Of a DNA stretch of 64,000 nucleotides, positions 6,427 through 61,764 are shown piece by piece. The DNA lies in IMG/VR virus record IMGVR_UViG_3300022935_000005, positions 186,001 to 250,000 of that record. One strand, given 5' to 3'. The number at the start of each line of letters is the position of its first letter. The stretch's first letter is position 1. A program made the translations under genes and the position numbers. The notes below the pieces were generated by a model, which ran no database searches, was not told the origin of the DNA, and saw only the letters and a list, made by a program, of their open reading frames with translations.

Positions 6427-6837
6427 TTAGCCGACTCCTGCTGATCCTGAGTAGTTATTTATTAGCATATTCGATTCGATTCCAGTAAGTCCGGCCACAA
6501 CTGAAGCAGTAACTCCAGTCGTCGAATCGCTGAGCAAGAAAACACTGGAGACCCTAAGTTCTCCCTCAAAGCTTTCTTGATTATTCAAGATGAAGTAGTT
6601 GTTGTTCACGACACCTTTGACACCGTTAGCGGAGAACCCTACTCTTAGCGGTACATTTCCGCTCGAGCCGGCGAGGTTATTCGTTACCATTATGAATCTT
6701 GTGATGTTCGGGAATTCTACTTCTATAGGTTCTTCGCTAGAGGCAGGCACGGCCAGAGATGAAGTAACATACGGCACCGCACTAATGGCGTACGAAGACA
6801 CATCACCAAGTCCTCTTTTCGGCCACGAACTGCTCAA
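6427..6837 (-). CDS. hypothetical, probable virion structural protein
   Basis: Ser/Val/Gly-rich; GAGGAGG RBS on the minus strand at about 6844-6850. Confidence 0.5.
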   Translation of the reverse strand: MSSSWPKRGLGDVSSYAISAVPYVTSSLAVPASSEEPIEVEFPNITRFIMVTNNLAGSSGNVPLRVGFSANGVKGVVNNNYFILNNQESFEGELRVSSVFLLSDSTTGVTASVVAGLTGIESNMLINNYSGSAGVG

Positions 6838-8514: not shown

Positions 8515-9258
8515 ATGGAAAAGAAGATTAAGAAAGTGGTGGCGTTTGATTTTGACGACACCTTGGCCGTTACGAACTCACACGTAGGGATAAGGTCTAA
8601 TTTACTCGAGAATGCTTTCACCATTGCATCTCGTCTCGGATTAGATATCGCCTCCCGAGACGAAGACTGGATCTGGGTTAACTCGACCAACTACGAGACT
8701 TTTCTGTCTTTTTCTAGTGTGTCGATATCTGATTTTGAATATGATTATTCAGAAACAATGGCAGTAGATTTAGATTCAGTGTCCCCAATCCCTTCAATGA
8801 TTATACAGTTGAAGGAATATCTCGCAGATCCCGATTGTTTGGTAATAATCTTGACGGCAAGGGCAGGCTACACTGACGTCTGGAGTCCTGTGAATAAGTG
8901 TGTAATTCCCTCCACAAACAGAGAGGGTATCGCTTCGTTCCTTAATTCACAAGGAATTATCATTCCTGATCACCACATCCATACCGTAGGTGATGTAGCT
9001 GCTGAAGGTGGTCTTACATCAGTGGCTAAGGCGAATGTTTTATCTCATTATGCGATCGCCTACCAACCTGAGGAAATCATATTTTATGATGACAGCGAGA
9101 GAAATATCGCTCGCGCGTCCAAGATACACTTGAGAGAAGGTGTAAATTCCAGGATCACGCTAAACTACGTAAAAGACGGTCATGTCGCACGTTCCGTCCA
9201 GAGCAATAAAGGGTTAAAACAGTGGTTGTACCGCATATTTAAGACTATGCTGGAGTAA
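8515..9258 (+). CDS. HAD-superfamily phosphatase
   Basis: VAFDFDDTL, ILTAR, K, FYDDSERN motifs I-IV. Confidence 0.75.
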   Translation: MEKKIKKVVAFDFDDTLAVTNSHVGIRSNLLENAFTIASRLGLDIASRDEDWIWVNSTNYETFLSFSSVSISDFEYDYSETMAVDLDSVSPIPSMIIQLKEYLADPDCLVIILTARAGYTDVWSPVNKCVIPSTNREGIASFLNSQGIIIPDHHIHTVGDVAAEGGLTSVAKANVLSHYAIAYQPEEIIFYDDSERNIARASKIHLREGVNSRITLNYVKDGHVARSVQSNKGLKQWLYRIFKTMLE

Positions 9259-10067
9259 TGCCTGTGAAAGACCTGAGAAAACTAGTTTCCCTGCTTTTAG
9301 AAGAAGGGTACCAAAGCCATACTTTCGAGCCCGTAGTTGGTGATATTGTTGCCAATGATAACCCAAACTGTAAGCATCGAGGATCGATTGGCAGAGTCCT
9401 AACCATCCAAGCTCTGGATAATGACCAGGGAAAGACGGCGTCTTACGAATGCTTAAACTCTGGAGATGAGTGGGAAGAAGGTGATGTTTTAACAAAGACG
9501 CTCGATCAGTTGGTACCTGCTGTCTCAAAAGACTTCGCGTATCATATGACGAATGGTCTAGGCATGACTGAATCGATATATCGCCCCGGTTCCAGAGCTT
9601 TTTTTGACCTCGTAAGAGAGTTTCGAGTTTTGTCTCACAGAGGAGCCTACTCACCCTCCTACTTCGAGTCGTACTATCTTTTTGAGACTGACTTGGGCGA
9701 ATATGGTATGTATGATGGTCACCCGGTACCGCTTGACTGGCCAATGCCAGATGAAGACCTTTTCGAAGCAGAATATAAGGGCCGGGATGTCGACCTGAAT
9801 TCTCCTATGAGATCTTCTGGGCCTAAGAAGTACAAGGTCTACACCAAGAATGATAAGGGTAACGTTATCCAAGTTAACTTTGGAGACGCCAAGGGTGGGT
9901 TATCAGCAAAGATGGACGATGATGATGCCCGAGCGAACTTTGCTTCTCGGCACAATTGTGATAGTAAAGCAAAGGAAGATAAGACCAAGCCAGGCTACTG
10001 GTCCTGTCGGCTGCCCAGGTACTGGAAAGAGCTTGGGTTTAAGAAGAATAGTTATAGATTTTGGTAG
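9258..10067 (+). CDS. multidomain phage protein with leader-like N-terminus
   Basis: KDLRKLVSLLLEE N-terminus; C-terminal KKYKVY..VNFGD..RANFASRHNC..PGYWSCR domain. Confidence 0.6.
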   Translation: MPVKDLRKLVSLLLEEGYQSHTFEPVVGDIVANDNPNCKHRGSIGRVLTIQALDNDQGKTASYECLNSGDEWEEGDVLTKTLDQLVPAVSKDFAYHMTNGLGMTESIYRPGSRAFFDLVREFRVLSHRGAYSPSYFESYYLFETDLGEYGMYDGHPVPLDWPMPDEDLFEAEYKGRDVDLNSPMRSSGPKKYKVYTKNDKGNVIQVNFGDAKGGLSAKMDDDDARANFASRHNCDSKAKEDKTKPGYWSCRLPRYWKELGFKKNSYRFW

Positions 10068-11227: not shown

Positions 11228-11497
11228 ATGAGAATCACAAGACGACAACTTAGAGACATTATCCGTGAAGCTCTCGAGCTTGATGAAGACGTCCGCAAGC
11301 GCGGAGACGAGTGGTGTGCTTATGTCGATGACAAGCTGACCAAGGCAGAGAAAGAAAACAACCCCAAGAAATATAAGGGTAAGAAGGTCGGAAGTGTCCA
11401 GCGAACCAAGTCAGGCAAAATCAGGATGAAGGCTCGTGCTTGCTACAAATCAAAGAAAAAGGCCAACAATGCAATGGCCGCAGCAATGATGGGATAA
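11228..11497 (+). CDS. MKITK-type leader protein, basic
   Basis: MRITRRQLRDIIREALELDE. Confidence 0.6.
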   Translation: MRITRRQLRDIIREALELDEDVRKRGDEWCAYVDDKLTKAEKENNPKKYKGKKVGSVQRTKSGKIRMKARACYKSKKKANNAMAAAMMG

Positions 11498-11500
11498 CAA

Positions 11501-11845
11501 ATGTCTACTAGCCCGGAGCTTTACACATATCGAGCGTTCGTTAGGAAAGTGTACGATGGGGATACGGTCACAGTTGACGTCGATCTCGGGTGGTCAGTTG
11601 TGCTCAAAGCTCAAAAGATCCGCCTCGTCCGCATTAATGCTCCAGAAGTTCGTGGAGAACAGCGCACGGAAGGTCTAAAATCTAGAGACGCTTTACGAGA
11701 CAAAATCGGAAACAAGTGGGTAAAGATCAAAACTGAAAAGGATAAGAAGGGTAAATTCGGCCGATGGCTCGGAGAGATCTGGCTTGAAGACGAGTGCGTC
11801 AATGATTGGCTTCTCAAGGAAGGTCATGCTGAGGAGTATAAATGA
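11501..11845 (+). CDS. thermonuclease (SNase-like)
   Basis: VYDGDTV, IRLVRINAPE, GKFGRWLG, NDWLLKEGHA. Confidence 0.9.
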   Translation: MSTSPELYTYRAFVRKVYDGDTVTVDVDLGWSVVLKAQKIRLVRINAPEVRGEQRTEGLKSRDALRDKIGNKWVKIKTEKDKKGKFGRWLGEIWLEDECVNDWLLKEGHAEEYK

Positions 11846-13137
11846 GTCTACTGCTAGAATACAGTAAGTACAATCCTGTGATAAGGGATAGAAGCTATAT
11901 CACTGAAGTTTTAGGGATTAAAGTCCCTCTGTACGAGTCGTATGAGTACTATACTCCAGAGCTACAGTCAAGGATTATTCGAGAGCACTTGCTTCTTGAG
12001 GGCTTCTTTGACGGTTTAAAGAGACTGAAGGATGACGCTCTATTATTCGGTAAATCTCTTAAGCAGATAATCACTAAACCTGACCTCATTGGATCGTTTG
12101 TGGCGGCCCTCAATAAGATGGTACTTAACAAGATGATTAGACCGATAGGGTCTTTTCTTAAGATGGTCAAGGAGAAGCTTACTGAGTTGGGGGCGGACAA
12201 GTTTCCGACGTTCATAAAGTTTGCAGACGGCTTGCTTACAAGCCTCAATAAGATCTTAGAAAAAGTGAATGGTCTAGATGGGTGGAAGAAAGCTGTGGGA
12301 GCGATGAGCTTAGCATTATCCATGAAATACATCTGGAACGAGATCGGTGAGCTGATCGAAGAAGGTCAAAAGAAGATTGGAGAAGTGGTACCAGCTTTTG
12401 ACATAATCAAAGCAGCAGCGGAAGGAGCTGCTGAGGCCGCAGGCGATAAACTGGAGAAAGCCAAGGAGGCTGTAAAGGGTCTTTTGAGCTGGCTGAAAGA
12501 GCAGATAGTAGAGAAAGCCGGTGAATTTATAAAAGAGAAGCTTAAGGGTCTAGCTACGTCTGTTTTAGGGTCTGCGATATCAGGTGGTGTTAAAAAAGTC
12601 TGGGACACCCTTACAGCTCTTTACGGAGGAGCGAAATTTGTTATGGATACGTTAAATCCAGCGTTCAAGCGTTTTACACACAAAGTGACTGCCGAAAGTA
12701 CACTTCGTGAATACGTAAGAGAGCTTTTATCTGAGCAAGCCAGTTACGGGTCAGCAGACGGCCAGTCTCGGATTGTCAAAGTCAATAACATGAAGATTCG
12801 TATAGACTTAGAAGATCTAGACTACAGAGCCACTCAGCACTCTAGAGAGCGTCAGCACCGACATAAGGATTCTTCCGGCCGCGGATTCAAGATATCGGGT
12901 GATTCCATCCAGAGAGCTATTGACGCTGCAATTGGTAACATCATAAACGACTATGCCAATGGCGAACTCAGGAACAACGAGCGGTTCTTGATCGCCGCGA
13001 AAACAGGGAAAGGTGACCCGCTGAATATTGTTGGCGCTCTGAATATGCAGAAGGGTCCTGACGATTTTGCAGTTATTACAGTAATGAGAAAGCAGAATTT
13101 TATGTCTGATCTGCCGACGTACGAGGTGAGTCTATGA
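11842..13137 (+). CDS. multidomain protein: helical domain plus possible RelE/DUF4258-like C-domain, with internal leader motifs
   Basis: RIIREHLLLE and ESTLREYVRELLSE motifs; C-domain HSRERQHR..VITVMRK. Confidence 0.5.
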   Translation: MSLLLEYSKYNPVIRDRSYITEVLGIKVPLYESYEYYTPELQSRIIREHLLLEGFFDGLKRLKDDALLFGKSLKQIITKPDLIGSFVAALNKMVLNKMIRPIGSFLKMVKEKLTELGADKFPTFIKFADGLLTSLNKILEKVNGLDGWKKAVGAMSLALSMKYIWNEIGELIEEGQKKIGEVVPAFDIIKAAAEGAAEAAGDKLEKAKEAVKGLLSWLKEQIVEKAGEFIKEKLKGLATSVLGSAISGGVKKVWDTLTALYGGAKFVMDTLNPAFKRFTHKVTAESTLREYVRELLSEQASYGSADGQSRIVKVNNMKIRIDLEDLDYRATQHSRERQHRHKDSSGRGFKISGDSIQRAIDAAIGNIINDYANGELRNNERFLIAAKTGKGDPLNIVGALNMQKGPDDFAVITVMRKQNFMSDLPTYEVSL

Positions 13138-13442
13138 AGCTGTTATCATGGCTCAAACATCGATTAAGCCACAAACTAGAACATTTCTCCCTAGAAAATC
13201 TTAAACGTTTCCTGAAAGAAAACGGTCTCGCGTTTGTTGTTATATTTCTAGCGTGGGAGATTATCGAGGATGTACTTTTCCCGATCCTCTTTACCGTTTT
13301 AGGAACATACGTCCACCCTGTGTTTTACGCAGGTGTTCCAGCAGCTTGGCTCCTTTGTTTACACTGGCTAGCAGTACCACTGATGTGGGGTGCATGGGTA
13401 AAGATTAGAGGAAAAAGGAAAGACAATGAGCCTTCTTCGTGA
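13134..13442 (+). CDS. small membrane protein
   Basis: Two to three hydrophobic segments. Confidence 0.55.
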   Translation: MKLLSWLKHRLSHKLEHFSLENLKRFLKENGLAFVVIFLAWEIIEDVLFPILFTVLGTYVHPVFYAGVPAAWLLCLHWLAVPLMWGAWVKIRGKRKDNEPSS

Positions 13443-13950
13443 ATACATCAAAGAGATCCTAAATGAGGGTGTTGAGTTCCATGAGCTTGATTCGCCCTTA
13501 ACCTATAATAGATCACGTAACGTGAAGCGCTTGGCATATTGTGATACATCAGTCACCGAACCGCCAGAAGGTCATGACACATATTTCACGGAATATCAGA
13601 GGATGGAAAGATATGGAAAAACCGGCCGGCGTCTGAAGAAGCCACGAAAAGGTGAGCTAATCCCAGGAGTTTCGAATGTTTGTGTTATCGGCTTTCTTGA
13701 CTATCACCACTACGGTAAAACTGCAGAAGGAAAGGACATGTGGTACATTGACTACATGAAGACCCGGGGTGATTCAACAGGTCAAGGCGTTGCCAGTAAA
13801 CTCATAGATGAATTCTTTGAGAGGTACGTCGATCCAGACGGTGGGTACGTTCACTTCGGCAAGATGATGAGAAAAGAGATCGGGCATCTTAAAGACAAGA
13901 TGGCCGAGAAGTACCCTAATGCAGAAGTAATCGGGGCTGTGAATTATTGA
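13426..13950 (+). CDS. LLREYI-leader protein, GNAT-like acetyltransferase
   Basis: MSLLREYIKEILNE; YIDYMKTRGDSTGQGVASKLID resembles GNAT motif A. Confidence 0.6.
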   Translation: MSLLREYIKEILNEGVEFHELDSPLTYNRSRNVKRLAYCDTSVTEPPEGHDTYFTEYQRMERYGKTGRRLKKPRKGELIPGVSNVCVIGFLDYHHYGKTAEGKDMWYIDYMKTRGDSTGQGVASKLIDEFFERYVDPDGGYVHFGKMMRKEIGHLKDKMAEKYPNAEVIGAVNY

Positions 13951-14528
13951 TGAGACTACTTCGCGAATACATAAGAGAGCTGCTGAAAGAATCTGTTGAT
14001 CCCAAGATCATGTCAATGATCGATCGTGCAGAAAAGGCTGGCTTCAAGGTCGTTGTTAGGAGTGGTTATACGGCTGTGTACGACCCTAATATCGATGTTT
14101 CAGACTGGTATGAGGGCTATATTGGTCCAGCAAACAGGGTAGCAGGTATATCTTGGAACCCAAGTCCGGGAGCACATGGGCAACCTTGTTCTGGCGCCAA
14201 GGAAGTATCAGTTTCCGGCGCCAAAGAATTCGGGATGGGTCCATTAGCTTATGACGTTGCGATCGAAGCTTCGGGTGGTCTAATGTCTGACAGGCTGGAG
14301 GTTTCGAAAGACGCAAGAAATGTGTGGAAACATTACATGAAGAAGCGACCTGACGTGATAATCCAACAACTTGACAACCTGAAAAACGAGCTCACCCCAG
14401 AAAGAGAAGACAACTGTGATCATCCAGATGGATTTTCGGTTAGCTCACCACTTACAAAAATGTACTCTAAGATTGGAACGCCAGTCATGGATGAGCTGCG
14501 ACGACGAGGGATGTTGGAAGAACAATGA
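13950..14528 (+). CDS. LLREYI-leader protein, GNAT-like paralog 1
   Basis: MRLLREYIRELLKESVDPKIMSM; FGMGPLAYDVAIE..SDRLEVSKDARNVW. Confidence 0.6.
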   Translation: MRLLREYIRELLKESVDPKIMSMIDRAEKAGFKVVVRSGYTAVYDPNIDVSDWYEGYIGPANRVAGISWNPSPGAHGQPCSGAKEVSVSGAKEFGMGPLAYDVAIEASGGLMSDRLEVSKDARNVWKHYMKKRPDVIIQQLDNLKNELTPEREDNCDHPDGFSVSSPLTKMYSKIGTPVMDELRRRGMLEEQ

Positions 14529-15073
14529 GACTACTTCGTGAGTATATAAGGGAAATCTTGAGTGAGAACAAGCTGCGTGTCTTCGATTTTGATGACACAC
14601 TTGCTGTCACTGATTCCATGATTATACTTACTAAAGCGACGGGTGAGCAGATAAAGCAGACTCCTGGAGAGTGGGCCATATACATACCTGAACCCGGCGA
14701 TGAGTTCGATTACAGCGAGTTCGGCGGCGAGTTAATGAACCCTCGAGAAATCAAAGACTACATGAATATCCTCCGCCGCGTTTTGGGAGCAGGTACAGAC
14801 GGTCGCAAAGCTGTGATCTTAACTGCTCGTGCTGAAGTTGCTCGACAGGGCATCATTAACTTTTTACAAGACATTGGTCTCAACGTAAACGACATTGAGA
14901 TTGTAACGCTTGGTGAATCCGACCCACAATTTAAGGCGCGATGGATTGAAGACAAGATAAATAGCGGTTATGACGATGTGTATTTTGTCGATGACTCTGA
15001 TAAAAATATAGCGGCTGTGCAAGCGCTAGCTGTGAAATATCCCAATATAAAGTTGAGGACACAACTGGTATGA
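14525..15073 (+). CDS. LLREYI-leader protein, HAD-superfamily phosphatase
   Basis: MRLLREYIREILSE; VFDFDDTL, ILTAR, FVDDSDKN. Confidence 0.75.
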   Translation: MRLLREYIREILSENKLRVFDFDDTLAVTDSMIILTKATGEQIKQTPGEWAIYIPEPGDEFDYSEFGGELMNPREIKDYMNILRRVLGAGTDGRKAVILTARAEVARQGIINFLQDIGLNVNDIEIVTLGESDPQFKARWIEDKINSGYDDVYFVDDSDKNIAAVQALAVKYPNIKLRTQLV

Positions 15074-15687
15074 AACTATTGCGCGAATACATAAGAGAGC
15101 TACTGAAAGAATCTGTTGACCCCAAGATCATGTCAATGATTGACAGAGCTGAAGCTGCAGGTTACAAAGTCAGACTGTTTGTGGTCCCAAAGCAGGGAGG
15201 ATCTGTCAGGTTGGTTGAACCCGGTGACAAACCTCTACGACTGGACGGCAAAAACGCAATAGGTTCGGTTGAATGGAGAAAACCAAAGTTCAGCGATCAT
15301 GGCAATTGCTCAGGCGGACAAAGCGTAGGTTGGTCTGAAGCTGATGGTGGATTCGGGCCGCTGTTATATGATGTTGCGATCGAAGCATCAGGCGGTTTAA
15401 TGCCCGATAGATTCGAAGTATCCGGTGAGGCAGAGGCAGTGTGGGATAGATACATGAACTCTCGTTCTGATGTTATTGTTCGCCAGCTGGATATCTTACC
15501 TGACTACGAAGAACCACAGATCACCCCCGACAATCCCAACGATGATTGCAGCCAAGTTCCAGCGCACGACATGCTGAAGGACAAGTGGCATACATCTTCC
15601 CTCAGCAAGATATACAGCAAGTCAGGTACTCCCGTTATTGATGAACTGATCAAGCGCGGCATGTTGATAGATAATAGGACAGTGTGA
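15070..15687 (+). CDS. LLREYI-leader protein, GNAT-like paralog 2
   Basis: MKLLREYIRELLKESVDPKIMSM; GGFGPLLYDVAIE..PDRFEVSGEAEAVW. Confidence 0.6.
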   Translation: MKLLREYIRELLKESVDPKIMSMIDRAEAAGYKVRLFVVPKQGGSVRLVEPGDKPLRLDGKNAIGSVEWRKPKFSDHGNCSGGQSVGWSEADGGFGPLLYDVAIEASGGLMPDRFEVSGEAEAVWDRYMNSRSDVIVRQLDILPDYEEPQITPDNPNDDCSQVPAHDMLKDKWHTSSLSKIYSKSGTPVIDELIKRGMLIDNRTV

Positions 15688-16049
15688 TGAATCTACTGCG
15701 CGAGTACGTAAGGGCTTTGCTTACTGAAAAGACTATCGCCATTGGCCAATGTTATCCCCATGCGATCAAGATGGCTCAACAGTCATCTGATGAAGAGTGG
15801 GATGATCTAGACAAGTTCAAGGTGGTCCACGGAAAAGTGACGAACAAATGGAATGATGAGTCATATGAGCATGCTTGGGTTGAAAAGGGTGACATGATAT
15901 TCGACTGGCAAACACACGTAACAAAGCCAGAAGGGATTCCAAAAGCTGTGTACTACGATAACTTCCAACCTGAAGCTTATGAAGAATACACTGCTGAAGA
16001 AGCTATAATCAATTGTACTAAGTCAGGGCAAGCGGGGCCTTGGAGATGA
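15687..16049 (+). CDS. LLREYI-leader protein, possible papain/transglutaminase-like Cys-His-Asp domain
   Basis: MNLLREYVRALLTE; GQCYPHA..VVHG..HAWVE..IFDW. Confidence 0.5.
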   Translation: MNLLREYVRALLTEKTIAIGQCYPHAIKMAQQSSDEEWDDLDKFKVVHGKVTNKWNDESYEHAWVEKGDMIFDWQTHVTKPEGIPKAVYYDNFQPEAYEEYTAEEAIINCTKSGQAGPWR

Positions 16050-16552
16050 ACCTGCTTCGCGAATACATAAGAGAGTTACTGACCGAGGAATCTACTACTG
16101 TTTCTCTACACAGAGGGTCAACTGAAGATTACTTCAGAGTGAATTTCAGCGTGGACGGTAGAATGGTTGGTTATGCAGAGGTCAACTCAACTCGTAGGTA
16201 CTCGAACTGCCAAGAAAATGTTATGGAACTTGAACAATCTCCAGAGTACATTGAAGCCAAAGAACGGCACGAGGCGACAAGCAAGTGGAGCTGGTCACCA
16301 AAGATGTACGTTACGAATAACGTCTGGATCCCCAACGAAGCTGACAGAGGGAAAGGTTACGGTAAGTTGATATATCAGGCAGCCATTGACCAGGCAATTC
16401 AATACGCAAGGTCTAGCGGTGGTGTGTTTATCGGTTCGGACGCATGCGATTCTGCCGGTTCCACCTCAGCTGATGCGGGCCGTGTATGGAGTTCACTGGG
16501 ACAACAGTTCGGTGCTAGCTCAGGCCAACTGATATTCGTGAGGACAAACTAA
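16046..16552 (+). CDS. LLREYI-leader protein, GNAT-like acetyltransferase
   Basis: MNLLREYIRELLTE; DRGKGYGKLIYQAAI (motif A)..SADAGRVW. Confidence 0.65.
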   Translation: MNLLREYIRELLTEESTTVSLHRGSTEDYFRVNFSVDGRMVGYAEVNSTRRYSNCQENVMELEQSPEYIEAKERHEATSKWSWSPKMYVTNNVWIPNEADRGKGYGKLIYQAAIDQAIQYARSSGGVFIGSDACDSAGSTSADAGRVWSSLGQQFGASSGQLIFVRTN

Positions 16553-17511
16553 TGAACCTACTCCGCGAGTACATAAGAGAGCTGCTGTTAAAAGAAGTCA
16601 AGTCCTCTGAACTTCCATGGGCAGAACTGTCTGATATTTTACGTAAAAAATTTCCTGGGTTTGGCGAAGAAGTAGAGATGCCGGCAGGAGGGAAACGTAA
16701 GCCTTTCGAGATAGAGCAGAGGACGGTGGCAGATAGGGGTCCCCAGAGATTGGCTAGCTTTACCATCGGATATGGTGACTTCTCCTACGATAAGCCTGCC
16801 ACTAAATTCTCTGACGCTGATTTAGACGCTGTCGTTGATGAGATCGATAAGTGGGCTGCTAATTTTGGATTACATGTGGCAAGAGACCAACTCGCCATGA
16901 ATAGCAATATCGCAATGCTCAAAGTCGGGCTGATGGATCTGGAGACAGACGAAGTCGAGAAACCAGCGAAACTATATCATGTAACAGATCCTGTGACAGC
17001 TGAGACGATTCTCTCGCAAGGTTTAGAACCTCAGTCAGCTAGACGGCGAGGCAAGGCTGGAAAAGCAGGTGATATGATGGGTGCAGCAGGGAGAAGTTAC
17101 CCTGGCAGAATATTCATGTTCACAGATGCACAGACTGCCCTCGCTAGAGCTTCGAAGACTGCAAAGATTATGCATAGGCTTTCCTTTGTTAGGGATGTCT
17201 TAGAAGACGAAGCAGAGTACGAGAAGGGCGCCTCTCAAACAATCGGTAAGTCAGAAACCCCAGTTGTTTTAGAGATTGACGGATCTGCTGTCGGTAAAGT
17301 AATGGCAGATCCAGATTTTGAGATGGGTAAGGGTGCCGTATTCTCAACAGATGCAGTTCCACCATCTGCGATATCGAAGTATAAAGATGTAGACAGGGGC
17401 AGCTTCGAATACGATTGGCGAGATAACTATAAAGTAAGAGAGATGCTCAGAAGTGATTATGGCGGCACAATGTCAAAAATCAAAGCATGGGAGCAGAGCC
17501 AAGGATTATGA
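16552..17511 (+). CDS. LLREYI-leader protein with Tpt1/KptA / ADP-ribosyltransferase-like domain
   Basis: KLYHVTDPVTAETILSQGLEP, GRIFMFTD, VVLEID, VFSTDAVPPSAI. Confidence 0.6.
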   Translation: MNLLREYIRELLLKEVKSSELPWAELSDILRKKFPGFGEEVEMPAGGKRKPFEIEQRTVADRGPQRLASFTIGYGDFSYDKPATKFSDADLDAVVDEIDKWAANFGLHVARDQLAMNSNIAMLKVGLMDLETDEVEKPAKLYHVTDPVTAETILSQGLEPQSARRRGKAGKAGDMMGAAGRSYPGRIFMFTDAQTALARASKTAKIMHRLSFVRDVLEDEAEYEKGASQTIGKSETPVVLEIDGSAVGKVMADPDFEMGKGAVFSTDAVPPSAISKYKDVDRGSFEYDWRDNYKVREMLRSDYGGTMSKIKAWEQSQGL

Positions 17512-18059
17512 AACTACTACGCGAATACATAAGAGAGCTACTGAAAGAATCTGTTGATCCCAAGATCATGTCAATGGTTGATAGACTCGAAGCGGACGGG
17601 GGATATGTTAGAATTAGCAAGAACGCTGCAAGAGTTATTATTGATGGACACAATGTCGCGTTTGTCCAATTCGAAACACCGGGAGTTTGGTCCAAAGGTG
17701 AGTGTTCGGGCGCGAAAATAGTATCTTACTCTGAAGCGGAAAGAAGTTACGGTCCTTTAGCATATGATATCGCCATTGAAGCAACAGGCGGACTTGCACC
17801 AGATCGCGAAGAAGTTTCAGGAGATGCAAAAAACGTTTGGTCTTACTACGAAAAGAATAGACCTGATGTAACAATCGCCCAGCTAGATGATGAAAACAAT
17901 ATGTTGACCCCTGACGGTGGAGACAATTGCAATCAGAAGTCTGCCATGCTGGATGCAGAAAGTTACCACTTTGATAGATCACCGCTCAGTAAGGTATACA
18001 GGAAGTCAGGTACGCCCGTTATAGATGAGTTGCGGAAACGAGGGATGTTGAAGGAATGA
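17508..18059 (+). CDS. LLREYI-leader protein, GNAT-like paralog 3
   Basis: MKLLREYIRELLKESVDPKIMSM; SYGPLAYDIAIE..PDREEVSGDAKNVW. Confidence 0.6.
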   Translation: MKLLREYIRELLKESVDPKIMSMVDRLEADGGYVRISKNAARVIIDGHNVAFVQFETPGVWSKGECSGAKIVSYSEAERSYGPLAYDIAIEATGGLAPDREEVSGDAKNVWSYYEKNRPDVTIAQLDDENNMLTPDGGDNCNQKSAMLDAESYHFDRSPLSKVYRKSGTPVIDELRKRGMLKE

Positions 18060-18904
18060 ATCTACTTCGTGAATACATAAAAGAGGTATTAAGCGAGGTA
18101 ACAGCTCTTCCTCAGGAATACTTCACTGCAATCGATGCCGCTGTGTCTTCTTCAAATTTTTGGGAAGAGCCGAATTCTCAAGATGATATAGACTACTATG
18201 AGTCTAAGGCAGGAGGGGTCATGGCTACTCCTGCCGCAGAGGCTCTTTCTGAGGCTCTAGAAGGGGCTATGGAAGAGGTTGGTCTAGACATGGACATATT
18301 GGTTAGGTCACACGATACAGATGATCTGATGGGAATGTCTCTACATCCCGAGCATCCTGCTTGGCCTAATAGATGGCTCATCGACGCGAAGTGGTACGTC
18401 TCAAAAGAACGCCCGGGAAGAAGCACTATTGACATAGAGATGATGACATCAGAGGATGAAGACAACATTTCTCAAGCTCTGAACACCAGTGAGCTAGTCC
18501 GTCATATTACAGCAACAGTGAGACACGAGCTAGTACATTATCGACAGATGAAAAAACAGGCTGCCCATAAGGGGCTGGATGACACCGCCGCTTTTGAGGA
18601 AATGCTGAAAGATCCCCGCCAGATTCCGCCGGGCTCCGCGGATGATCCGGAGTGGCAGAAGAAGTACTTGAGTTCTCATATAGAGATCGATGCTCACGCT
18701 CACGATGCCGCCGAAGACTTGATCGCTGTATACTCCGCTAAAGAGATTGACGCAATACTCAGTAAAAAGGTTGATCTGTCTGATGATAGACTGCCCAACG
18801 CTGTTAAGCACTATATCGAGGTTCTTGGGCCCGACGATAAATCAACTCGTAAGTTCATGAGTAAGCTTTATACACAAGTCGAAAAGATGAAAAGTAGAAG
18901 ATAA
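18056..18904 (+). CDS. LLREYI-leader protein, HExxH zinc-metallopeptidase-like
   Basis: MNLLREYIKEVLSE; VRHELVHYRQ..YLSSHIEIDAHA. Confidence 0.65.
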   Translation: MNLLREYIKEVLSEVTALPQEYFTAIDAAVSSSNFWEEPNSQDDIDYYESKAGGVMATPAAEALSEALEGAMEEVGLDMDILVRSHDTDDLMGMSLHPEHPAWPNRWLIDAKWYVSKERPGRSTIDIEMMTSEDEDNISQALNTSELVRHITATVRHELVHYRQMKKQAAHKGLDDTAAFEEMLKDPRQIPPGSADDPEWQKKYLSSHIEIDAHAHDAAEDLIAVYSAKEIDAILSKKVDLSDDRLPNAVKHYIEVLGPDDKSTRKFMSKLYTQVEKMKSRR

Positions 18905-18933
18905 CAGGAATACTTAACACTAAAGGTAGTACA

Positions 18934-19572
18934 ATGGACGTTCTAAGACAGTTTATAAGACAAATAATTCTTGAGCAAATAGAGCAACCCGCTCCTGAAG
19001 CCTCTTTACCAAAGGGTGAATGGGTTTCTGTTGAGGCAGGAGACCCTATGAGATCTGTTATCGTTGACGACCTTTATGATATGCTGCAGTCGACATACGC
19101 TCCAATTGGTGGTCACTTTAAAGTCAAGAAGCCGTCCGACCTTGAAAGGTACAGGTTCTGGGTAGTTGCAGACATCGACGAAGATCCTGAACCTGACGTC
19201 GCTTTATTTGCGAAGCCTGATATCGGTGGTACGAAGATGGGCGCCGCCGCGAATGATGGTACAGCTGCAGCAGCTAACGCTTACAAAGACAAATCTTCTG
19301 AGTTGAGAGCTGGCGGCTCTATTGGCTCTGGCTCGAACTGGTGGGGTGAAGTTAGCGGCAAGCCCGCTTATGCGATGCTTAAGCGTGGTGCGCCAGCAGT
19401 CGAGGATGAAGCTGTAGTAATGCAGTTACTTGCTGGGGATGATATTATCTTTCACGGAGCTCATCCTGACCCGAATGCTCCAGCCCTTTTTAAGAGCGTG
19501 AACGGGTGGTATACCAAGAAGTTCGGAGCAAAGTCATCTACCAAGATTATTCTTGGGTCTCCGAGTTTGTAG
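18934..19572 (+). CDS. leader-bearing hypothetical protein
   Basis: MDVLRQFIRQIILEQ. Confidence 0.6.
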   Translation: MDVLRQFIRQIILEQIEQPAPEASLPKGEWVSVEAGDPMRSVIVDDLYDMLQSTYAPIGGHFKVKKPSDLERYRFWVVADIDEDPEPDVALFAKPDIGGTKMGAAANDGTAAAANAYKDKSSELRAGGSIGSGSNWWGEVSGKPAYAMLKRGAPAVEDEAVVMQLLAGDDIIFHGAHPDPNAPALFKSVNGWYTKKFGAKSSTKIILGSPSL

Positions 19573-20456: not shown

Positions 20457-21305
20457 TTGTTGTTTGATCTTAAGGATTGTCTTGTGAACGAATCTACAAT
20501 AAGAACCTACGTACGTGAGTGTCTTCTAGAGTCCAAAGAGAAAGTACGCGGTTATGTGAAACCAGACTCTAGTTTCTTTACTCTTGACGAGTGGCAGCTG
20601 GCTGTTGAGATGCTCCTAGAACTCCAGAAAGAAGGTGTCGATACCAGAGGTGGACAGTATACAGACCCAAGACTCATAGCGATCGTAGAGAGATATTTCG
20701 GATACCAACTAAACGATGAGGTCGAGAGATGGGACCTTCTAACAAAGAAGAACGTCCTTGATTTTGTGGAGGACTTTGTCAATCACCGCTTTTGGGGGTT
20801 GAGGAAAGAGTTTGGTCACTACTTTAAGGACATAAATCGCTTGCGATTTGCGTATTTCTACTCTCGAGGAGATCTAGAGCCATATGTCCTGATGGATGAT
20901 GAGTTCACTACTCAATTGTACGGTTCCACCAACAACCCAAAAGAACTTCTCCACTACACAACAATCAGAGGTGTTGAGAGGATTCAAAAAGCCATTGATT
21001 CTGGTTCTGCGTTTGATATATCAACGTTTACAGTCGCAGAGAGACCGTTTTTTCGTCCCGATTCGAATATCATCATAAAGCTTTTGGGAAATGTTCGGGC
21101 TGGCTTCAGAAGCGACATAAAATCTATGGCTGTTGATACCGGCCGCCGTGCTTGTAATCTTTATCGTCTAGAGTACCCTGGCGAAGACTTCAATAACATC
21201 TGTTACGAGTTAGAAACCTGTGACGGTGAGCTAAGGACGTCTTTGTGGAATGAATATATTGCTACTCCAATCGAGATATTGGAAGTTTTGAAGGTGAAAG
21301 TATGA
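20457..21305 (+). CDS. leader-bearing protein with possible ART-like C-domain
   Basis: NESTIRTYVRECLLE; ELLHYTTIRG..ISTFT..WNEYI (H-S-E-like pattern). Confidence 0.45.
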   Translation: MLFDLKDCLVNESTIRTYVRECLLESKEKVRGYVKPDSSFFTLDEWQLAVEMLLELQKEGVDTRGGQYTDPRLIAIVERYFGYQLNDEVERWDLLTKKNVLDFVEDFVNHRFWGLRKEFGHYFKDINRLRFAYFYSRGDLEPYVLMDDEFTTQLYGSTNNPKELLHYTTIRGVERIQKAIDSGSAFDISTFTVAERPFFRPDSNIIIKLLGNVRAGFRSDIKSMAVDTGRRACNLYRLEYPGEDFNNICYELETCDGELRTSLWNEYIATPIEILEVLKVKV

Positions 21306-24283: not shown

Positions 24284-24361
24284 GGGGCTATAGCTCAATC
24301 AGGTCAGAGCAACCGGCTCATAACCGGCAGGTTGTAGGTTCAAATCCTACTAGCCCTACCA
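24284..24361 (+). tRNA. tRNA with CAT anticodon, probably Ile2 (copy 1)
   Basis: GGGGCTA/TAGCCCT acceptor, CCGG-CTCATAA-CCGG anticodon arm, GGTTCAAATCC, CCA end; adjacent to tilS. Confidence 0.92.
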
Positions 24362-24386
24362 AATGTTTAATCGGAGAAATGAATCA

Positions 24387-48981: not shown

Positions 48982-48994
48982 TTGCTCGACAATC

Positions 48995-52298: not shown

Positions 52299-52526
52299 AT
52301 GAAAATCACAAAGAACCAACTTAGAAGAATTATCCGGGAAGAGCGCGCTAAGCTTGCACGTGGCAGAGCTGTTAACGAACAGTACTCACCGGGTCCCGAG
52401 GAGCGCCGCGCACGGTCCGCGATCGACCAGATTGTCACAGACTTTCTAGAGAGCGATGAGGGTGATCCGGCGTTAATTGCAGAGATTCTGAGAGAGATTG
52501 CCAACGACGTCGACGAAGAAATGTAG
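52299..52526 (+). CDS. MKITK-leader small acidic protein
   Basis: MKITKNQLRRIIREERAKL. Confidence 0.7.
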   Translation: MKITKNQLRRIIREERAKLARGRAVNEQYSPGPEERRARSAIDQIVTDFLESDEGDPALIAEILREIANDVDEEM

Positions 52527-52541
52527 TGGTCTGGGGGCGGC

Positions 52542-53078
52542 ATGAGAATCACAAAGAGACAACTTAGAAGAATTATCCGAGAAGCGATTGATGTTGTTGA
52601 TAGAGACACTGGCGAAGTTATGCGCTTTTCTGATGATAGTAGCGACAGCATGGCAGATCTTCCTGAAAAAGCCTGGCCTGACCTGGTAAAGCGGCTTGGG
52701 TTGAGCCCTAAAGACGTGGGTCTTGATGCTGCCGGTAATCAAGGATTTGAGCTAGACCAGAATGAGTTTATACGCCTTGACAACGAGACTCGTGAAAAAG
52801 CCTACAACCGTAAGATGAAAAAACAGGCAGCTGCCTACAAGGCTGATCGGGAAAGATTGGATATCGACAATCTCCTCGAGAGACTCCGCTATTGGGCACA
52901 AGACGCAGCGTCTGATTACATGGCTGACAATCCAGACACCGACCTGCAGGATATCGCCTATGACCTTGCGGACGCTTGGCAATTCGCGTTCGAAGAAGAT
53001 GAACGAGAAGAACTGTTGTGGCACTTTGACGGTGACCTTAACGACCTTAAGATTTTCGCAGCGGAGAGTATGGGATGA
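52542..53078 (+). CDS. MKITK-leader acidic protein
   Basis: MRITKRQLRRIIREA. Confidence 0.7.
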   Translation: MRITKRQLRRIIREAIDVVDRDTGEVMRFSDDSSDSMADLPEKAWPDLVKRLGLSPKDVGLDAAGNQGFELDQNEFIRLDNETREKAYNRKMKKQAAAYKADRERLDIDNLLERLRYWAQDAASDYMADNPDTDLQDIAYDLADAWQFAFEEDEREELLWHFDGDLNDLKIFAAESMG

Positions 53079-53371
53079 AAATCACAAAACGTCAACTACG
53101 AAGAATCATTAAGGAAGAGAAAGCTCGCATTTTGGCTGAGCAACAACTTGATCCTCAAGTTGCCGCCCAAGCTCTTGCGGAGCTAAAGAACGATGGGTGG
53201 TTTAGTATGATACAAACAGCGGCTACTGACGCAGCTGGTGACCTTGAGCAGCTCAGTGATCAGGTTGATGTCAAGTTAATGGACGCCGGCCTGAACGAGC
53301 TTGCCGTAGATATCAGAAGTGTTGTTGAGCTATTGGACAAGATTAGACAAGCAGCGTACGGTCAGAGGTAA
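53075..53371 (+). CDS. MKITK-leader small acidic protein
   Basis: MKITKRQLRRIIKEEKARILAE. Confidence 0.7.
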   Translation: MKITKRQLRRIIKEEKARILAEQQLDPQVAAQALAELKNDGWFSMIQTAATDAAGDLEQLSDQVDVKLMDAGLNELAVDIRSVVELLDKIRQAAYGQR

Positions 53372-53476
53372 CATGATGAAAAAAAAGCTAATGGAGCTGC
53401 AAAAGCTCGCTAGAGATATTCGCGTGAATGTCCAACCGACAGCTGAGCAATCAGCAAGCAAACGAGGGAGTTTCGA

Positions 53477-53932
53477 ATGAAAATTACAAAGACGCAACTA
53501 AGACAGATTGTTAGAGAAAGCGCAGCGATGGACGATGCTGTTTATGAGGCTGGCTACAAAGACGCGATGCAAGATCGCCCACATGGTGCTAATGCAGATA
53601 TGCGTGATATGGATCCAAGATCATATGACTACGGTTTCGATAAGGGTACCGCTGACCGCATGGACATGCAGCGACCGCTTGGAACCAGAGGGTTTTACGA
53701 AGGTAAGGTGAGAATCAAAAAGAGCGACCTTCAAAGAATCGTCAAGGAAGAGCTTATGTCTGAAGTCCGGACCGACGCGGACCTTGAAATGGACGCTATG
53801 TGGGACGAACTGTTTCAGGCACTAAAGAACAAAAGCTTCGGACTTGACCACGGTCTAGAAAGAGATGAAATTTACATCATGACAGGTGCTGCTGAGGGCA
53901 TCACGGTCAAGATAATGCGAAGAGGTCGATAA
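53477..53932 (+). CDS. protein with two MKITK-type leaders
   Basis: MKITKTQLRQIVRE and internal VRIKKSDLQRIVKEELMSE. Confidence 0.7.
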   Translation: MKITKTQLRQIVRESAAMDDAVYEAGYKDAMQDRPHGANADMRDMDPRSYDYGFDKGTADRMDMQRPLGTRGFYEGKVRIKKSDLQRIVKEELMSEVRTDADLEMDAMWDELFQALKNKSFGLDHGLERDEIYIMTGAAEGITVKIMRRGR

Positions 53933-54159
53933 TGCGTATTGCAAAGTCAGAGCTTAGAAGAATTATTGCAGAAGAGAGAGCAAAGCTTCAAGAACAGCGC
54001 CGCGGCCCAAGCGAAGCGCAAATAGAAGACGCCGTCTCTGGGATCGAGTTTGAGTTAAACAGACTGTATGACCAAGGGATGGATAACGCTGGCTTGCACA
54101 AAGTGCTCGACCAGATTAAGATTGACATTGACCGTGGATTTGTAGGAGAGCCAAGATGA
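53932..54159 (+). CDS. MKITK-leader small protein
   Basis: MRIAKSELRRIIAEERAKLQE. Confidence 0.7.
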   Translation: MRIAKSELRRIIAEERAKLQEQRRGPSEAQIEDAVSGIEFELNRLYDQGMDNAGLHKVLDQIKIDIDRGFVGEPR

Positions 54160-54416
54160 AAATCACAAAGAACCAATTACGAAGAATCATCAAAGAAGAG
54201 CGTGCTAAGCTGCTCAAAGAAGGTGGATATCGTCACCCGAAAACCGGTGAGGATCTGCTTCTTATGTTAAATGACGTCGTCGACAAACTCATGGACGCTG
54301 GTATGGATTTCTACGAGCTTGCTGATGAACTTCGAGGTTTGGCTGATGATGTGGAAAACAGCCAGCCTGAAGAGTCTCCGAAATTTATCGACATGACAGA
54401 TCCAAGGGAGTTGTAA
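54156..54416 (+). CDS. MKITK-leader small acidic protein
   Basis: MKITKNQLRRIIKEERAKLLKE. Confidence 0.7.
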   Translation: MKITKNQLRRIIKEERAKLLKEGGYRHPKTGEDLLLMLNDVVDKLMDAGMDFYELADELRGLADDVENSQPEESPKFIDMTDPREL

Positions 54417-54805
54417 TGAAAATCACGAAGAGCCAACTAAGAAGAATCATTAAGGAAGAGAAGGCGAAGCTGCTCAAAGAGTATGGCGCTATGAACATGG
54501 AAGCCCTGAGCCCGCTGGTTCAGTTTGGACAGGCGTATGTTGGTCTCGGCGATGCAGTTCAGTCACAGCTGATTGATCTTGTCAATGCACACATCGAAGG
54601 ACGCATCGAAGACGCAGTATATGAGATGAATCCAAATGCACTTGACATGGCGTTCCAGAGATTACAGCAACCCTTATCTGCTCTAGCAAGAGCAGGTAGC
54701 GAAGACGCCGAGGAAGTGATGGATGCCATGGAGGCAGCTGCTGAAATATTCGCAGAGGGCGACGCAGAAGTGGACGCCGATGCACGAGCTGCAGGAGATA
54801 TATAA
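54416..54805 (+). CDS. MKITK-leader acidic protein
   Basis: MKITKSQLRRIIKEEKAKLLKE. Confidence 0.7.
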   Translation: MKITKSQLRRIIKEEKAKLLKEYGAMNMEALSPLVQFGQAYVGLGDAVQSQLIDLVNAHIEGRIEDAVYEMNPNALDMAFQRLQQPLSALARAGSEDAEEVMDAMEAAAEIFAEGDAEVDADARAAGDI

Positions 54806-54806
54806 A

Positions 54807-55124
54807 ATGAAAATCACAAAGAACCAACTTAGAAGAATTATCAAAGAAGAGAAGACAAAACTTCTCGTTGAGATGAACGCTGTGGCAGACGCCGAGCGCT
54901 CCCTGGGTTTGTACGCTAACGCATCCACAGTCGACAAGCTGTCTAGCGCCCTACAAAGTCTTTTGATGGAAGTCGAAACAGGTGCGATTGAAGACGGTCT
55001 TGAAGAAGATGAAGCTGAAGACATGGCAGCGAACGCTGGACTCATGGCAGTCGCTAACGCATTCCAGTCAGTGGGTATGATTGCTGAATACGACGCACTA
55101 TACAGATTACTACAGCGGGGTTAA
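54807..55124 (+). CDS. MKITK-leader acidic protein
   Basis: MKITKNQLRRIIKEEKTKLLVE; start moved to ATG 54807 after AGGAG. Confidence 0.7.
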   Translation: MKITKNQLRRIIKEEKTKLLVEMNAVADAERSLGLYANASTVDKLSSALQSLLMEVETGAIEDGLEEDEAEDMAANAGLMAVANAFQSVGMIAEYDALYRLLQRG

Positions 55125-55130
55125 GACAAG

Positions 55131-55424
55131 ATGAAAATCACAAAGAACCAACTGCGAAGAATTATCAAGGAAGAGAAAGCGAAGCTTATGAACGAGCAGT
55201 TCAATTTTGCTGCTGCCGATCAAGAGATGATTAAGTGCGCTACACAGATGGGAGCTCTATTGGCAGGCCGGCCTGACGTTGCCACGGCAGTCCGTGATGC
55301 TCTAGCTGCAGGTCCTTTTAAGAAGGGAGCCGAGGCTCTTTTTAAAGCGTATGAGTCTGCACAAGCTGCTGCCGACACAGAGTACATGAGCTTTGGTGCC
55401 GGATACGATGACGACGATTTTTAG
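55131..55424 (+). CDS. MKITK-leader small protein
   Basis: MKITKNQLRRIIKEEKAKLMNE. Confidence 0.7.
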   Translation: MKITKNQLRRIIKEEKAKLMNEQFNFAAADQEMIKCATQMGALLAGRPDVATAVRDALAAGPFKKGAEALFKAYESAQAAADTEYMSFGAGYDDDDF

Positions 55425-55439
55425 GACTAGGAGAACAAA

Positions 55440-55901
55440 ATGAAAATCACAAAAAGACAATTACTTAGAATAATCAGAGAAGAAAAGGCCCGCATCGCTG
55501 AGCAGACTGTAGGTGTTGAAGACGTTTCTCAGTCAGAGGATGCGTTCGGTGGTGGAGACGTCGAGGAGGAGATCTTTGTCGATGCAGATGCCGATTCTTT
55601 ACTGAACCAGAACGATGATCCCGGTGAGGTTACCGACATCGAGGTCATACCTGAGCGTGTACGTTTGAAGAGACACCTCCGCAAGATTGTGTCAGAAGTT
55701 GCTGGCGGTGGTGGAGCGCTTCCTCCCGTTGATGACCTCGCTACTAAGCTTGCTAGTGTTGGATCTGAAGAAGCTCTTGACTTTATCCAGCGTGTTCTTG
55801 CCGCTATGTCGCGTAAAGCTGGCGCCTCGGCGGCTCCCGCTGAAGATGCAGTGGTAGAACCACCGGCTCCAATGCCCCCGGTTCCTGACGAAGAAGTTTA
55901 A
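55440..55901 (+). CDS. MKITK-leader very acidic protein with second internal motif
   Basis: MKITKRQLLRIIREEKARIAE; internal LKRHLRKIVSE. Confidence 0.7.
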   Translation: MKITKRQLLRIIREEKARIAEQTVGVEDVSQSEDAFGGGDVEEEIFVDADADSLLNQNDDPGEVTDIEVIPERVRLKRHLRKIVSEVAGGGGALPPVDDLATKLASVGSEEALDFIQRVLAAMSRKAGASAAPAEDAVVEPPAPMPPVPDEEV

Positions 55902-55925: not shown

Positions 55926-56690
55926 ATGGAAAGCAAAAGCTTACGTCTTATAAGACAACTTATACGCGAATCTCTCCTCGCTGAAGGTGTCTATGATCCG
56001 GGGGTCCTGAAAGCTGTTTTTATGGCTGGCGGACCAGGAAGTGGAAAAAGCTTCACTGCTAAGAAGATCTTTGGTGTACCGAGAGAAGTTGCAGCATACG
56101 CGACAGGTACTGCTAGCGGCTTGAAGCTTGTCAATTCAGATCCAGCATTTGAACATTTCCTCAAGAAAGCGGGTATCGATCCTGCTAGCCTTGGAAAGAT
56201 GTCAAAAGAGGAGTTCGAAGCTGTAACAGTCGGACCCGATAGTCCACGTGGTAAGGCAAAGACTCTCAGGGGCCAAGCTCAAGAACTATATCAGGGCGGC
56301 CGACTAGGGCTAGTCATCGACGGCACTGGAGACGACTTTGAAAAGATTAGTCGGAAGAAAGGTGAGCTTGAAAAGCTTGGGTACGATACCTACATGATTT
56401 TCGTCAACACCTCAGAAGAAGTGGCACTACAAAGAAACAGAGATCGTGAACGCAAGCTTCCTGACGAACTCGTATCTCAGATCTGGGGTGATGTCCAAAA
56501 GAACCTCGGCGCGTTTCAACAACTCTTCGGTTCTGACCGCATCGCGATTATTGACAATACAGAGTACGGTCCAGTTCCAGAAAAAGTCCAGAAAGCCGTT
56601 GACAAGTTCATCTCTCAACCAGTTAAGAATATCATCGGTAAGAAGTGGATTGAGAACGAGCTTCGTATGAAAGACCGCTCTGACAAATAA
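55926..56690 (+). CDS. leader-bearing P-loop kinase (zeta-toxin/AAA_33-like)
   Basis: LRLIRQLIRESLLAE; AVFMAGGPGSGKS, VNSD, LVIDGTG, ALQRNRDRER. Confidence 0.75.
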   Translation: MESKSLRLIRQLIRESLLAEGVYDPGVLKAVFMAGGPGSGKSFTAKKIFGVPREVAAYATGTASGLKLVNSDPAFEHFLKKAGIDPASLGKMSKEEFEAVTVGPDSPRGKAKTLRGQAQELYQGGRLGLVIDGTGDDFEKISRKKGELEKLGYDTYMIFVNTSEEVALQRNRDRERKLPDELVSQIWGDVQKNLGAFQQLFGSDRIAIIDNTEYGPVPEKVQKAVDKFISQPVKNIIGKKWIENELRMKDRSDK

Positions 56691-61374: not shown

Positions 61375-61764
61375 ATGAAAATAACAGAAAGCAACATCAG
61401 AAAGATAATCAGAGAAGAGCTCTCCTCACTTATGGAGCAGGACGAGGCGAAGCCAAAGAAGCTCGATGATCTTGACTTTAAGTCTGATGACCGAATGGAG
61501 TATGAGAGATGGGCTCGTTCTGCTGGTCACGTTTCTCCTGAAGTCCAATCAACTCTAGTTTCGTATTTCTTAAACCAAAATCTACAGAATGCTCATGACT
61601 TGCACCAGAGGCTCTGTGACGAACTCGGTTTAGACCATGATGCAGTGATGGCGGCTATGGAAAACCGACTAGAAAAAGAAGAAGATCCAGCTGCAGAGGA
61701 ATCTGCTCGAGAGCTCGATCTAGCACGCGTCGCAGAAGCAGTATCTGCAATCTCTAAGCTGTAA
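61375..61764 (+). CDS. MKITK-leader acidic protein (isolated copy)
   Basis: MKITESNIRKIIREELSSLMEQ; ATG 61375 after AAGGAG and ATATTTA. Confidence 0.7.
   Translation: MKITESNIRKIIREELSSLMEQDEAKPKKLDDLDFKSDDRMEYERWARSAGHVSPEVQSTLVSYFLNQNLQNAHDLHQRLCDELGLDHDAVMAAMENRLEKEEDPAAEESARELDLARVAEAVSAISKL

Follow-up and report, generated by a model that had tools for sequence, protein, structure and literature searches.

In a 64,000-nucleotide stretch of viral DNA (IMG/VR record IMGVR_UViG_3300022935_000005, positions 186,001 to 250,000; hereafter the window), ten consecutive genes open with a single 14-residue N-terminal peptide, consensus M-[N/K]-LLREYIRELL-x-E (the class-1 tag), and ten further consecutive genes open with a second, MKITKxQLRRIIKE, also of 14 residues (the class-2 tag). 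The data suggest, with a probability of roughly 70%, that both tags are cleavable propeptides that target proteins to the prohead core, in the manner of the capsid-targeting sequence (CTS) of phage T4 but much expanded. A preliminary description of this DNA had proposed a capsid-loading role for the first tag, and every part of that proposal that can be addressed from sequence comes out in its favour: the presence of an S77 protease, the sharp end at Glu14 in the same motif as the capsid site, the modularity of the tag, and its likeness to the T4 CTS. The capsid-targeting principle is established in T-even phages (PMC3012670, PMC9026906), and the variant seen here is new; a search of the published literature for both tag motifs returned no relevant paper, and none on CTS in marine or jumbo phages that describes such tags.

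The class-1 motif in the form M-x-LLREY(I/V)(R/K)x(L/I/V)L-x-E opens ten consecutive plus-strand open reading frames (ORFs), and on this the ORF list, a six-frame motif scan and the codon view agree. When the tag is expressed as a degenerate DNA pattern, the window holds nine matches, all on the plus strand and exactly at the first nine starts listed below, against 0.00 expected from 100 dinucleotide-preserving shuffles. The nine tagged ORFs and the variant at 18934 all stand where the preliminary description had placed them. A hidden Markov model (HMM) of the 14 residues scores the ten array ORFs at 19.5-24.4 bits, finds one internal copy, and returns nothing comparable in the other five frames. 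The coordinates also bear out the overlapping junctions reported earlier: the genes lie in tandem over 13.4-19.6 kb of the window, translationally coupled through overlaps of 1 or 4 nt (ATGA or TGATG type), the exception being a 29-nt gap before 18934. The array genes are as follows, with lengths in amino acids (aa) and the source of each assignment in brackets.

13426..13950, + strand: class-1 tagged gene, 174 aa, weak GNAT-like body, family F4 (ORF list, profiles, HMM)
13950..14528, + strand: class-1 tagged gene, 192 aa, paralogue family F0 (ORF list, HMM, paralogue comparison)
14525..15073, + strand: class-1 tagged gene, 182 aa, HAD / polynucleotide-kinase-phosphatase-like body (profiles, pattern)
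15070..15687, + strand: class-1 tagged gene, 205 aa, family F0, modelled with AlphaFold2 (AF2) (homologues, AF2)
15687..16049, + strand: class-1 tagged gene, 120 aa, candidate Cys peptidase (invariant residues)
16046..16552, + strand: class-1 tagged gene, 168 aa, weak GNAT-like body (profiles, pattern)
16552..17511, + strand: class-1 tagged gene, 319 aa, C-terminal Tpt1/KptA-like ADP-ribosyltransferase-fold domain (Foldseek, profiles)
17508..18059, + strand: class-1 tagged gene, 183 aa, family F0 paralogue (paralogue comparison, pattern)
18056..18904, + strand: class-1 tagged gene, 282 aa, HExxH motif, weak zincin-like match (profiles, pattern)
18934..19572, + strand: class-1 tag variant MDVLRQFIRQIILE, 212 aa, family F5, with homologues that carry the canonical tag (HMM, families)

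Outside the array, the window holds four further forms of the tag. Three of these, at 9258, 20484 and 55926, had been noted before as variants; they are real diverged tags, whose homologues in related contigs are canonical.

12697..12738, + strand: internal class-1 tag copy (18.7 bits) inside the 431-aa ORF 11842-13137, located at about these coordinates, with a tape-measure-like part on its N-terminal side and a 146-aa part on its C-terminal side (HMM)
9258..10067, + strand: degenerate tag; the homologue in related contig L017 (family F16) is canonical (families)
20484..21305, + strand: diverged tag, probable GTG start at 20484; the related-contig homologue (family F15) is canonical (families)
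55926..56690, + strand: P-loop kinase (Zeta_toxin/AAA_33-like) with a diverged tag; a homologue (family F22) has the class-1 tag (families)

Residue and codon statistics for class 1 are drawn from 90 distinct tagged proteins and their genes. Information content is high across residues 1-14 and collapses at residue 15, where Ser is commonest. Arg5 is present in 90/90, Leu4 in 88/90, Tyr7 and Ile8 each in 87/90, and Glu14 in 84/90. Met directly precedes the tag in 182 of 208 matches, and GTG starts explain several of the others. Positions 3, 4, 11 and 12 draw on all six Leu codons, and Glu is encoded by both of its codons; synonymous change at the Leu and Glu codons is close to saturation. As judged from this codon use, the class-1 tag is selected as a peptide. 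It ends sharply at Glu14.

This bears on a very different proposal, in which the conserved 42 nt would act mainly as nucleic acid, either as a translation-initiation region or as a homology patch for cassette recombination, with the peptide as a by-product. Three codons fit such a role, being more fixed than genome usage predicts (Ile8 ATA in 82/87, Arg5 CGY in 78/90, Arg9 AGR in 77/79), as do the shuffling of array content and order between genomes and the fusion of neighbouring cassettes in some of them. However, it does not sit well with the near-saturation at the Leu and Glu codons, with class-2 synonymous variation that is free at nearly every position, or with retention of the class-1 peptide across genomes whose bodies share only ~45-70% identity. 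Recombination could also be a secondary use of the tag and not the reason for its existence. Taken together, a nucleic-acid element is very unlikely.

A separate observation concerns the Ile codon. ATA makes up 26% of Ile codons genome-wide, as compared to 82/87 at Ile8, and the class-2 Ile positions avoid it. A tRNA with a CAT anticodon (24284-24361) lies directly upstream of a gene for TilS, the lysidine synthetase (24363-25040). Given this pairing, the phage probably supplies its own ATA decoding.

The hydrophobic residues of the class-1 tag fall at positions 3, 4, 7, 8, 11 and 12 (L3, L4, Y7, I8, L11 and L12), the pattern of an amphipathic helix, and charged residues occupy five of the 14 positions (5, 6, 9, 10 and 14). 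In both AF2 models, of 15070 and 16552, the tag forms a separate N-terminal helix with a low predicted local distance difference test (pLDDT) score. The 15070 model has a pLDDT of 89.5 overall, with a confident body and low confidence in the tag helix at residues 4-13; the 16552 model has a moderately confident body behind the tag helix. A secretion or membrane-insertion signal would likewise be N-terminal and kept across unrelated proteins, but a tag with no hydrophobic core or run, five charges, and no twin-arginine or lipobox pattern does not fit a Sec or Tat signal, which makes export extremely improbable.

The modularity claimed for the tag holds up well. It is found on 31 body families that BLAST does not join, in ~25 related contigs of uncultured marine jumbo phages, and the strict class-1 pattern occurs on 22 IMG/VR contigs of 20-293 kb. 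The gene content and order of the arrays vary between genomes, and the number of genes per genome with a tag of either class is at least 29. Homologous bodies can carry different tags, class-1 in one genome and class-2 or diverged in the window (families F21, F16, F15 and F22), and the tagged HAD protein (14525) aligns to an untagged paralogue (8515) from its own residue 16 onward. Family F0 has at least 479 homologues in marine metagenomes; the eleven that were read all keep the tag, one preceded by Met-Ala and one, 5'-truncated, with a variant form. In a scan of a genome collection, the tag appeared in three metagenome-assembled genomes only, on large contigs resembling mis-binned phage, which gave no host clue. 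Some members among the homologues of 15070 (P0079, P0102) have a 50-100-residue insertion between tag and body, which in P0102 is lysine-rich.

What follows the tag is diverse, if less so than first described. The earlier statement that all bodies are unrelated is too strong, as three of the ten (13950, 15070 and 17508) are F0 paralogues with 52-54% identity. Among the body labels given at that stage, HAD stands: DUF2608 in 14525 is the sole Pfam match above cut-off for the array proteins, phrog_415 agrees with it, and a DxDxT motif lies 5 residues past Glu14. The GNAT-like, HExxH and Tpt1 matches all fall below the Pfam thresholds, and of these only the Tpt1/ADP-ribosyltransferase label gains fold-level support. 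Here, Foldseek places a Tpt1/KptA-like ADP-ribosyltransferase-fold domain in 16552 (probability 1.0, E 7e-5, TM-score ~0.4), other enzymes of this fold ranking lower, and some homologues of 16552 are named Tpt1/KptA by JGI. The invariant Cys22, His48 and His62 of 15687, together with acidic residues, make it a candidate Cys peptidase; in relatives, fusions that join it to other cassettes reach 688 aa. A Foldseek search with the F0 family gave no significant PDB match and faint GNAT-like hints only. PADLOC returned no matches for the tagged proteins, and a profile search for a MuF-type packaging domain found none in the ten array proteins, all of which are single-domain.

The second tag class shows the same organization. 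Across 432 distinct proteins, the class-2 tag is exactly 14 residues long and ends in Glu14 in 428/430, and conservation drops sharply past about residue 15. IMG/VR holds 98 stretches with this tag, in arrays that reach 11 copies, a wider spread than that of class 1. Its bodies are small and acidic, with a median isoelectric point (pI) of 4.7. In addition to at least four further genes elsewhere in the genome, the class-2 tag is carried by the following features of the window.

52299..55901, + strand: second array, 10 consecutive class-2 ORFs of 75-178 aa with body pI 4.05-4.98, starting at 52299, 52542, 53075, 53477, 53932, 54156, 54416, 54807, 55131 and 55440
11228..11497, + strand: class-2 tagged gene, 89 aa, basic; a homologue elsewhere (family F21) has a class-1-like tag
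61375..61764, + strand: isolated class-2 tagged gene, 129 aa

A T4-type morphogenesis block lies ~93 kb upstream of the class-1 array in the same genome, and also on the IMG/VR contigs that hold the window. This head module (locus L052) was reached by walking upstream along a JGI contig identical to the window; T4 head proteins had no matches in the loci searched before that point. The block encodes Terminase_6N, Portal_T4, a 280-aa protein, Peptidase_S77, five small ORFs, a 505-aa acidic protein and a Gp23-type capsid protein, and also holds gp13, two sheath genes and a T4_baseplate protein. The protease of the block is as follows.

L052:5514-6128: prohead protease, Peptidase_S77 (PF03420), T4 gp21 family (profile, BLAST, PDB)

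It matches phrog_207 at 8.7e-49, T4 gp21 with 28% identity (E 9e-22), and PDB entry 5JBL, the T4 gp21 structure. Its His (GECDHP) and Ser (GISSRG) align with T4 GELNHP and GVSSRG; with both catalytic residues kept, the enzyme looks functional. All characterised S77 proteases, including those of T4, phiKZ, 201phi2-1 and SPN3US, cleave after Glu (PMC5694885). The preliminary description had held that a genome lacking a Glu-specific head protease would speak against packaging; an S77 protease of the gp21 family is in fact encoded on contigs identical to the window.

The sites at which such a protease would act can be compared with the tags. In T4, maturation removes 65 residues from the start of gp23 and 10 from that of gp24 (PMC9958956). 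By BLAST, gp23 residues 60-65 align with G-Q-V-L-R-E of the capsid protein encoded here, followed by S-S, and all 31 distinct capsid proteins compared from the wider clade have Q-[VIL]-L-[RK]-E there. The ten residues removed from T4 gp24 end in L-L-R-E, followed by S (read from AF158101). The class-1 tag ends in L-L-x-E, with Ser as the most frequent next residue, and its L12-x-E14 fits the gp21-type (L/I)-x-Glu site by sequence match, as does I12-[KR]-E14 of class 2. Since the capsid V-L-R-E|S and gp24 L-L-R-E|S sites match the end of the tag, the tag looks like it ends in the predicted maturation site of this phage family.

Other head-module proteins offer further parallels. The 280-aa protein between portal and protease (L052 4672-5514) contains M-S-L-L-R-E-Y-V-F, which resembles the first eight residues of the class-1 tag, and the LL(R/K)(E/Q)Y(V/I)F segment is kept in 67 homologues; comparison with T4 gp67, gp68, gp22 and gp21 by hhalign revealed no similarity. 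One speculation is that the tag may imitate a core-protein contact of this protein. The 505-aa acidic protein just upstream of the capsid gene has an N-terminus resembling that of T4 gp22 and no profile match. Class-2 bodies show a weak link to a 91-aa protein encoded between the protease and capsid genes (pairwise E 6e-5 to 5e-3 in a tiny database); the class-2 HMM misses the N-termini of this and of a 138-aa head-module protein, which were linked by pairwise BLAST in that tiny database alone. Separately, a small protein encoded on the minus strand of the window (6427-6837) is paralogous (31% identity, E 4e-11) to the 119-aa protein whose gene directly follows that of the protease (L052 6128-6487), and may be an additional head protein whose gene lies outside the head module.

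Two ClpP-like genes are also present, at window 2784-3467 and L048 9390-9992. The product of the former carries 90 extra residues at its N-terminus and looks like the ClpP-type head-maturation proteases of small phages; no head genes adjoin the gene. As a head protease this gene (phrog_94) was considered and rejected: its neighbours are a deformylase and an FtsZ-like gene, and the true S77 protease is in the head module. The location of the second in a replication block forms part of the case against ClpP in this role. The same pair, with the many proteostasis genes of this genome (deformylase, GroEL, DnaJ, HSP20, FKBP), would suit a tag that is an N-terminal degron, marking early proteins for timed destruction by a Clp-type machine. 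Yet the ClpP-like genes are unlinked to the arrays, ClpX, ClpA or an adaptor were not seen in the parts examined, a degron needs neither a fixed length nor a terminal Glu, and the head-module parallels would become coincidence. A degron is accordingly given little credence, slightly less than a nucleic-acid element.

If the tags are instead capsid-targeting propeptides, the process would involve: formation of a short helix with a hydrophobic face (L3, L4, Y7, I8, L11 and L12); docking of the attached protein, through this helix, onto the scaffolding core during prohead assembly; and cleavage after Glu14, in its phi-L-x-E context (phi, hydrophobic), by the gp21-family S77 prohead protease. Cleavage would free the mature protein inside the head, from which it would leave with the DNA at the next infection. 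The class-2 tag would do the same for the second array, whose small acidic proteins resemble a small head-module protein. On this reading, the 13.4-19.6 kb array would represent a variable set of internal or ejected enzymes, potentially with effector roles.

The closest known counterpart is the CTS of T4 IPI, IPII, IPIII and Alt, which is removed by gp21. The T4 CTS and the putative propeptide here are both short and N-terminal (10-19 residues in T4, 14 here), end in phi-x-Glu and are borne by otherwise unrelated, fast-changing proteins; the T-even internal proteins are a diverse set with the CTS alone in common (PMC3012670). Six of ten positions of the tag are the same as or similar to the N-terminus of T4 IPII/IPIII (AF158101): M1, K2, E6, F/Y7, I8 and E10. 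Targeting by the T4 CTS depends on residues 4 and 7, and its processing on residues 8 and 10 (PMC9026906); tag positions 4, 7 and 8 are nearly invariant. This genome shares with T4 a gp21-family protease, a T4-type portal and a gp23-type capsid protein. One putative cargo here (16552) has an ADP-ribosyltransferase fold, and T4 Alt is a packaged, gp21-processed ADP-ribosyltransferase (PMC9958956, PMC9026906). In contrast to T4, the present lineage is uncultured and marine, with a genome of at least 281 kb, a DnaE-type polymerase and no GenBank phage match; its tag is 14 residues long as compared to 10 and comes in two classes.

Several observations weigh against capsid targeting. With median pI values of 5.2 (class 1) and 4.7 (class 2), the bodies are acidic and mostly enzyme-like, whereas T4 cargo consists of small proteins described as basic (PMC9026906). 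The tagged genes lie in tandem, translationally coupled arrays and are far more numerous than in T4, where a handful are scattered. Some 93 kb separate the head module from the arrays, which belong to a long run of same-strand genes that also includes metabolic and tRNA genes. The T4 late promoter TATAAATA is absent. The CTS match, at ten residues, is too short for statistics or for distinguishing homology from convergence, and could be convergent. The gp22-like scaffold label of the 505-aa protein derives from position and N-terminal likeness alone. The fixation of ATA at Ile8 is a nucleotide- or codon-level constraint beyond what peptide function explains. Finally, queries with the array, three tagged proteins and one class-2 protein found no DNA or protein match among GenBank phages.

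The acidic, enzyme-like cargo and the position of the arrays among non-structural genes would fit a docking or oligomerisation helix that acts in the infected cell, gathering enzymes onto a hub such as a phage compartment, an FtsZ/tubulin-like filament or a membrane site. The amphipathic spacing (3, 4, 7, 8, 11 and 12), the detachment of the tag from the body in the models, and the divergent FtsZ/tubulin homologue in the genome are also compatible with this. It leaves unexplained the invariant Glu14 and abrupt end of conservation, the identity of the tag end with the predicted capsid maturation site, and the likeness to the T4 CTS, and no hub protein was identified. Such a helix is unlikely, if the least so of the four alternatives weighed here. 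None of the four accounts for a constant length, a Glu at the end and the agreement with the capsid maturation site.

Other systems share parts of this arrangement. Encapsulins take up diverse enzymes into an HK97-fold shell by means of a short terminal peptide, which is sufficient for loading; this peptide usually lies at the C-terminus and stays uncleaved, and the shell is a cellular nanocompartment, not a virion. The head and ejection proteins of phiKZ, 201phi2-1 and SPN3US offer another parallel, as these jumbo myophages have many head-internal proteins and a gp21-type protease that cuts after Glu, and among their ejection proteins, paralogues can have the same N-terminus (PMC5694885). Their motif is A/S/G-x-E and their propeptides are mostly >100 residues (PMC5694885), as compared to Leu/Ile at P3 and 14 residues here, and they lack a single short tag common to dozens of unrelated families. 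The polyvalent proteins of phages and conjugative elements, which combine several domains and are injected along with the DNA, include ADP-ribosyltransferases, GNATs, metallopeptidases and nucleotide-acting enzymes (PMC7824862). The domain repertoire here is similar, and in other genomes some cassettes form fusion proteins with several domains, up to 688 aa long; unlike polyvalent proteins, the domains here are mostly separate genes, each with its own tag, and the ten array proteins have no MuF-type domain.

A more elaborate and tentative possibility, for which the odds are poor, is that the two tags, equal in length and in their final Glu, form an address code that sorts proteins to different head fates. 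Class-1 enzymes would be ejected into the host, the small acidic class-2 proteins, akin to a head-core protein, could serve as expendable core filler or as DNA-mimic-like anti-restriction cargo, the class-1 tag would mimic the helix of the 280-aa protein, and the tag DNA would also act as a recombination handle for the shuffling of cassettes between genomes. Were this so, one could tell directly from sequence which proteins uncultured phages inject.

Should the tags load proteins into the capsid, sequence alone would give a list of what an entire clade of uncultured ocean jumbo phages packages and co-injects: dozens of proteins for each genome, and several hundred different ones over the contigs sampled. 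This would provide a catalogue of candidate host-takeover or counter-defence enzymes, with ADP-ribosyltransferase-fold, phosphatase, peptidase-like and kinase members. It would also make the T4 CTS principle ancient and scalable, not a peculiarity of T-even coliphages, and add a set of new tags, diversified by nature, with which foreign proteins could be loaded into phage heads.

Two contigs, IMG/VR 3300022935_000005 (280,913 bp) and JGI Ga0255766_10000004 (248,183 bp), match the window with 0 mismatches. As judged from its gene content, the genome is that of a huge phage of marine bacteria: it encodes deformylase, the two ClpP-like proteins, an FtsZ/tubulin-like protein, TilS, seven tRNAs, PEPCK, IMPDH, DnaJ, GroEL, sigma factors and a DnaE-type polymerase, with HSP20 and FKBP as further proteostasis genes. 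The divergent FtsZ/tubulin-family protein (window 4183-5265) has a GGGGGTGS signature, and its best PDB sequence matches are FtsZ (E ~1e-7). On account of this tubulin-like gene, a role of the tag in import into a phage nucleus was considered and set aside, no nucleus system being seen in the parts examined.

Two minor features of the DNA remain. The GC-rich island at window 48000-52000 (0.54-0.57 versus ~0.45 elsewhere) holds a sulfotransferase-like gene and was possibly acquired recently. The motif GAATACTTA has 4 copies in the window versus 0.63 expected. It occurs at window 18908, 30517 and 61789 and at L052 6946 and 12406, 24-49 nt upstream of five gene starts that include tagged 18934, PEPCK and two head-module genes, and is a possible phage promoter or regulatory site.

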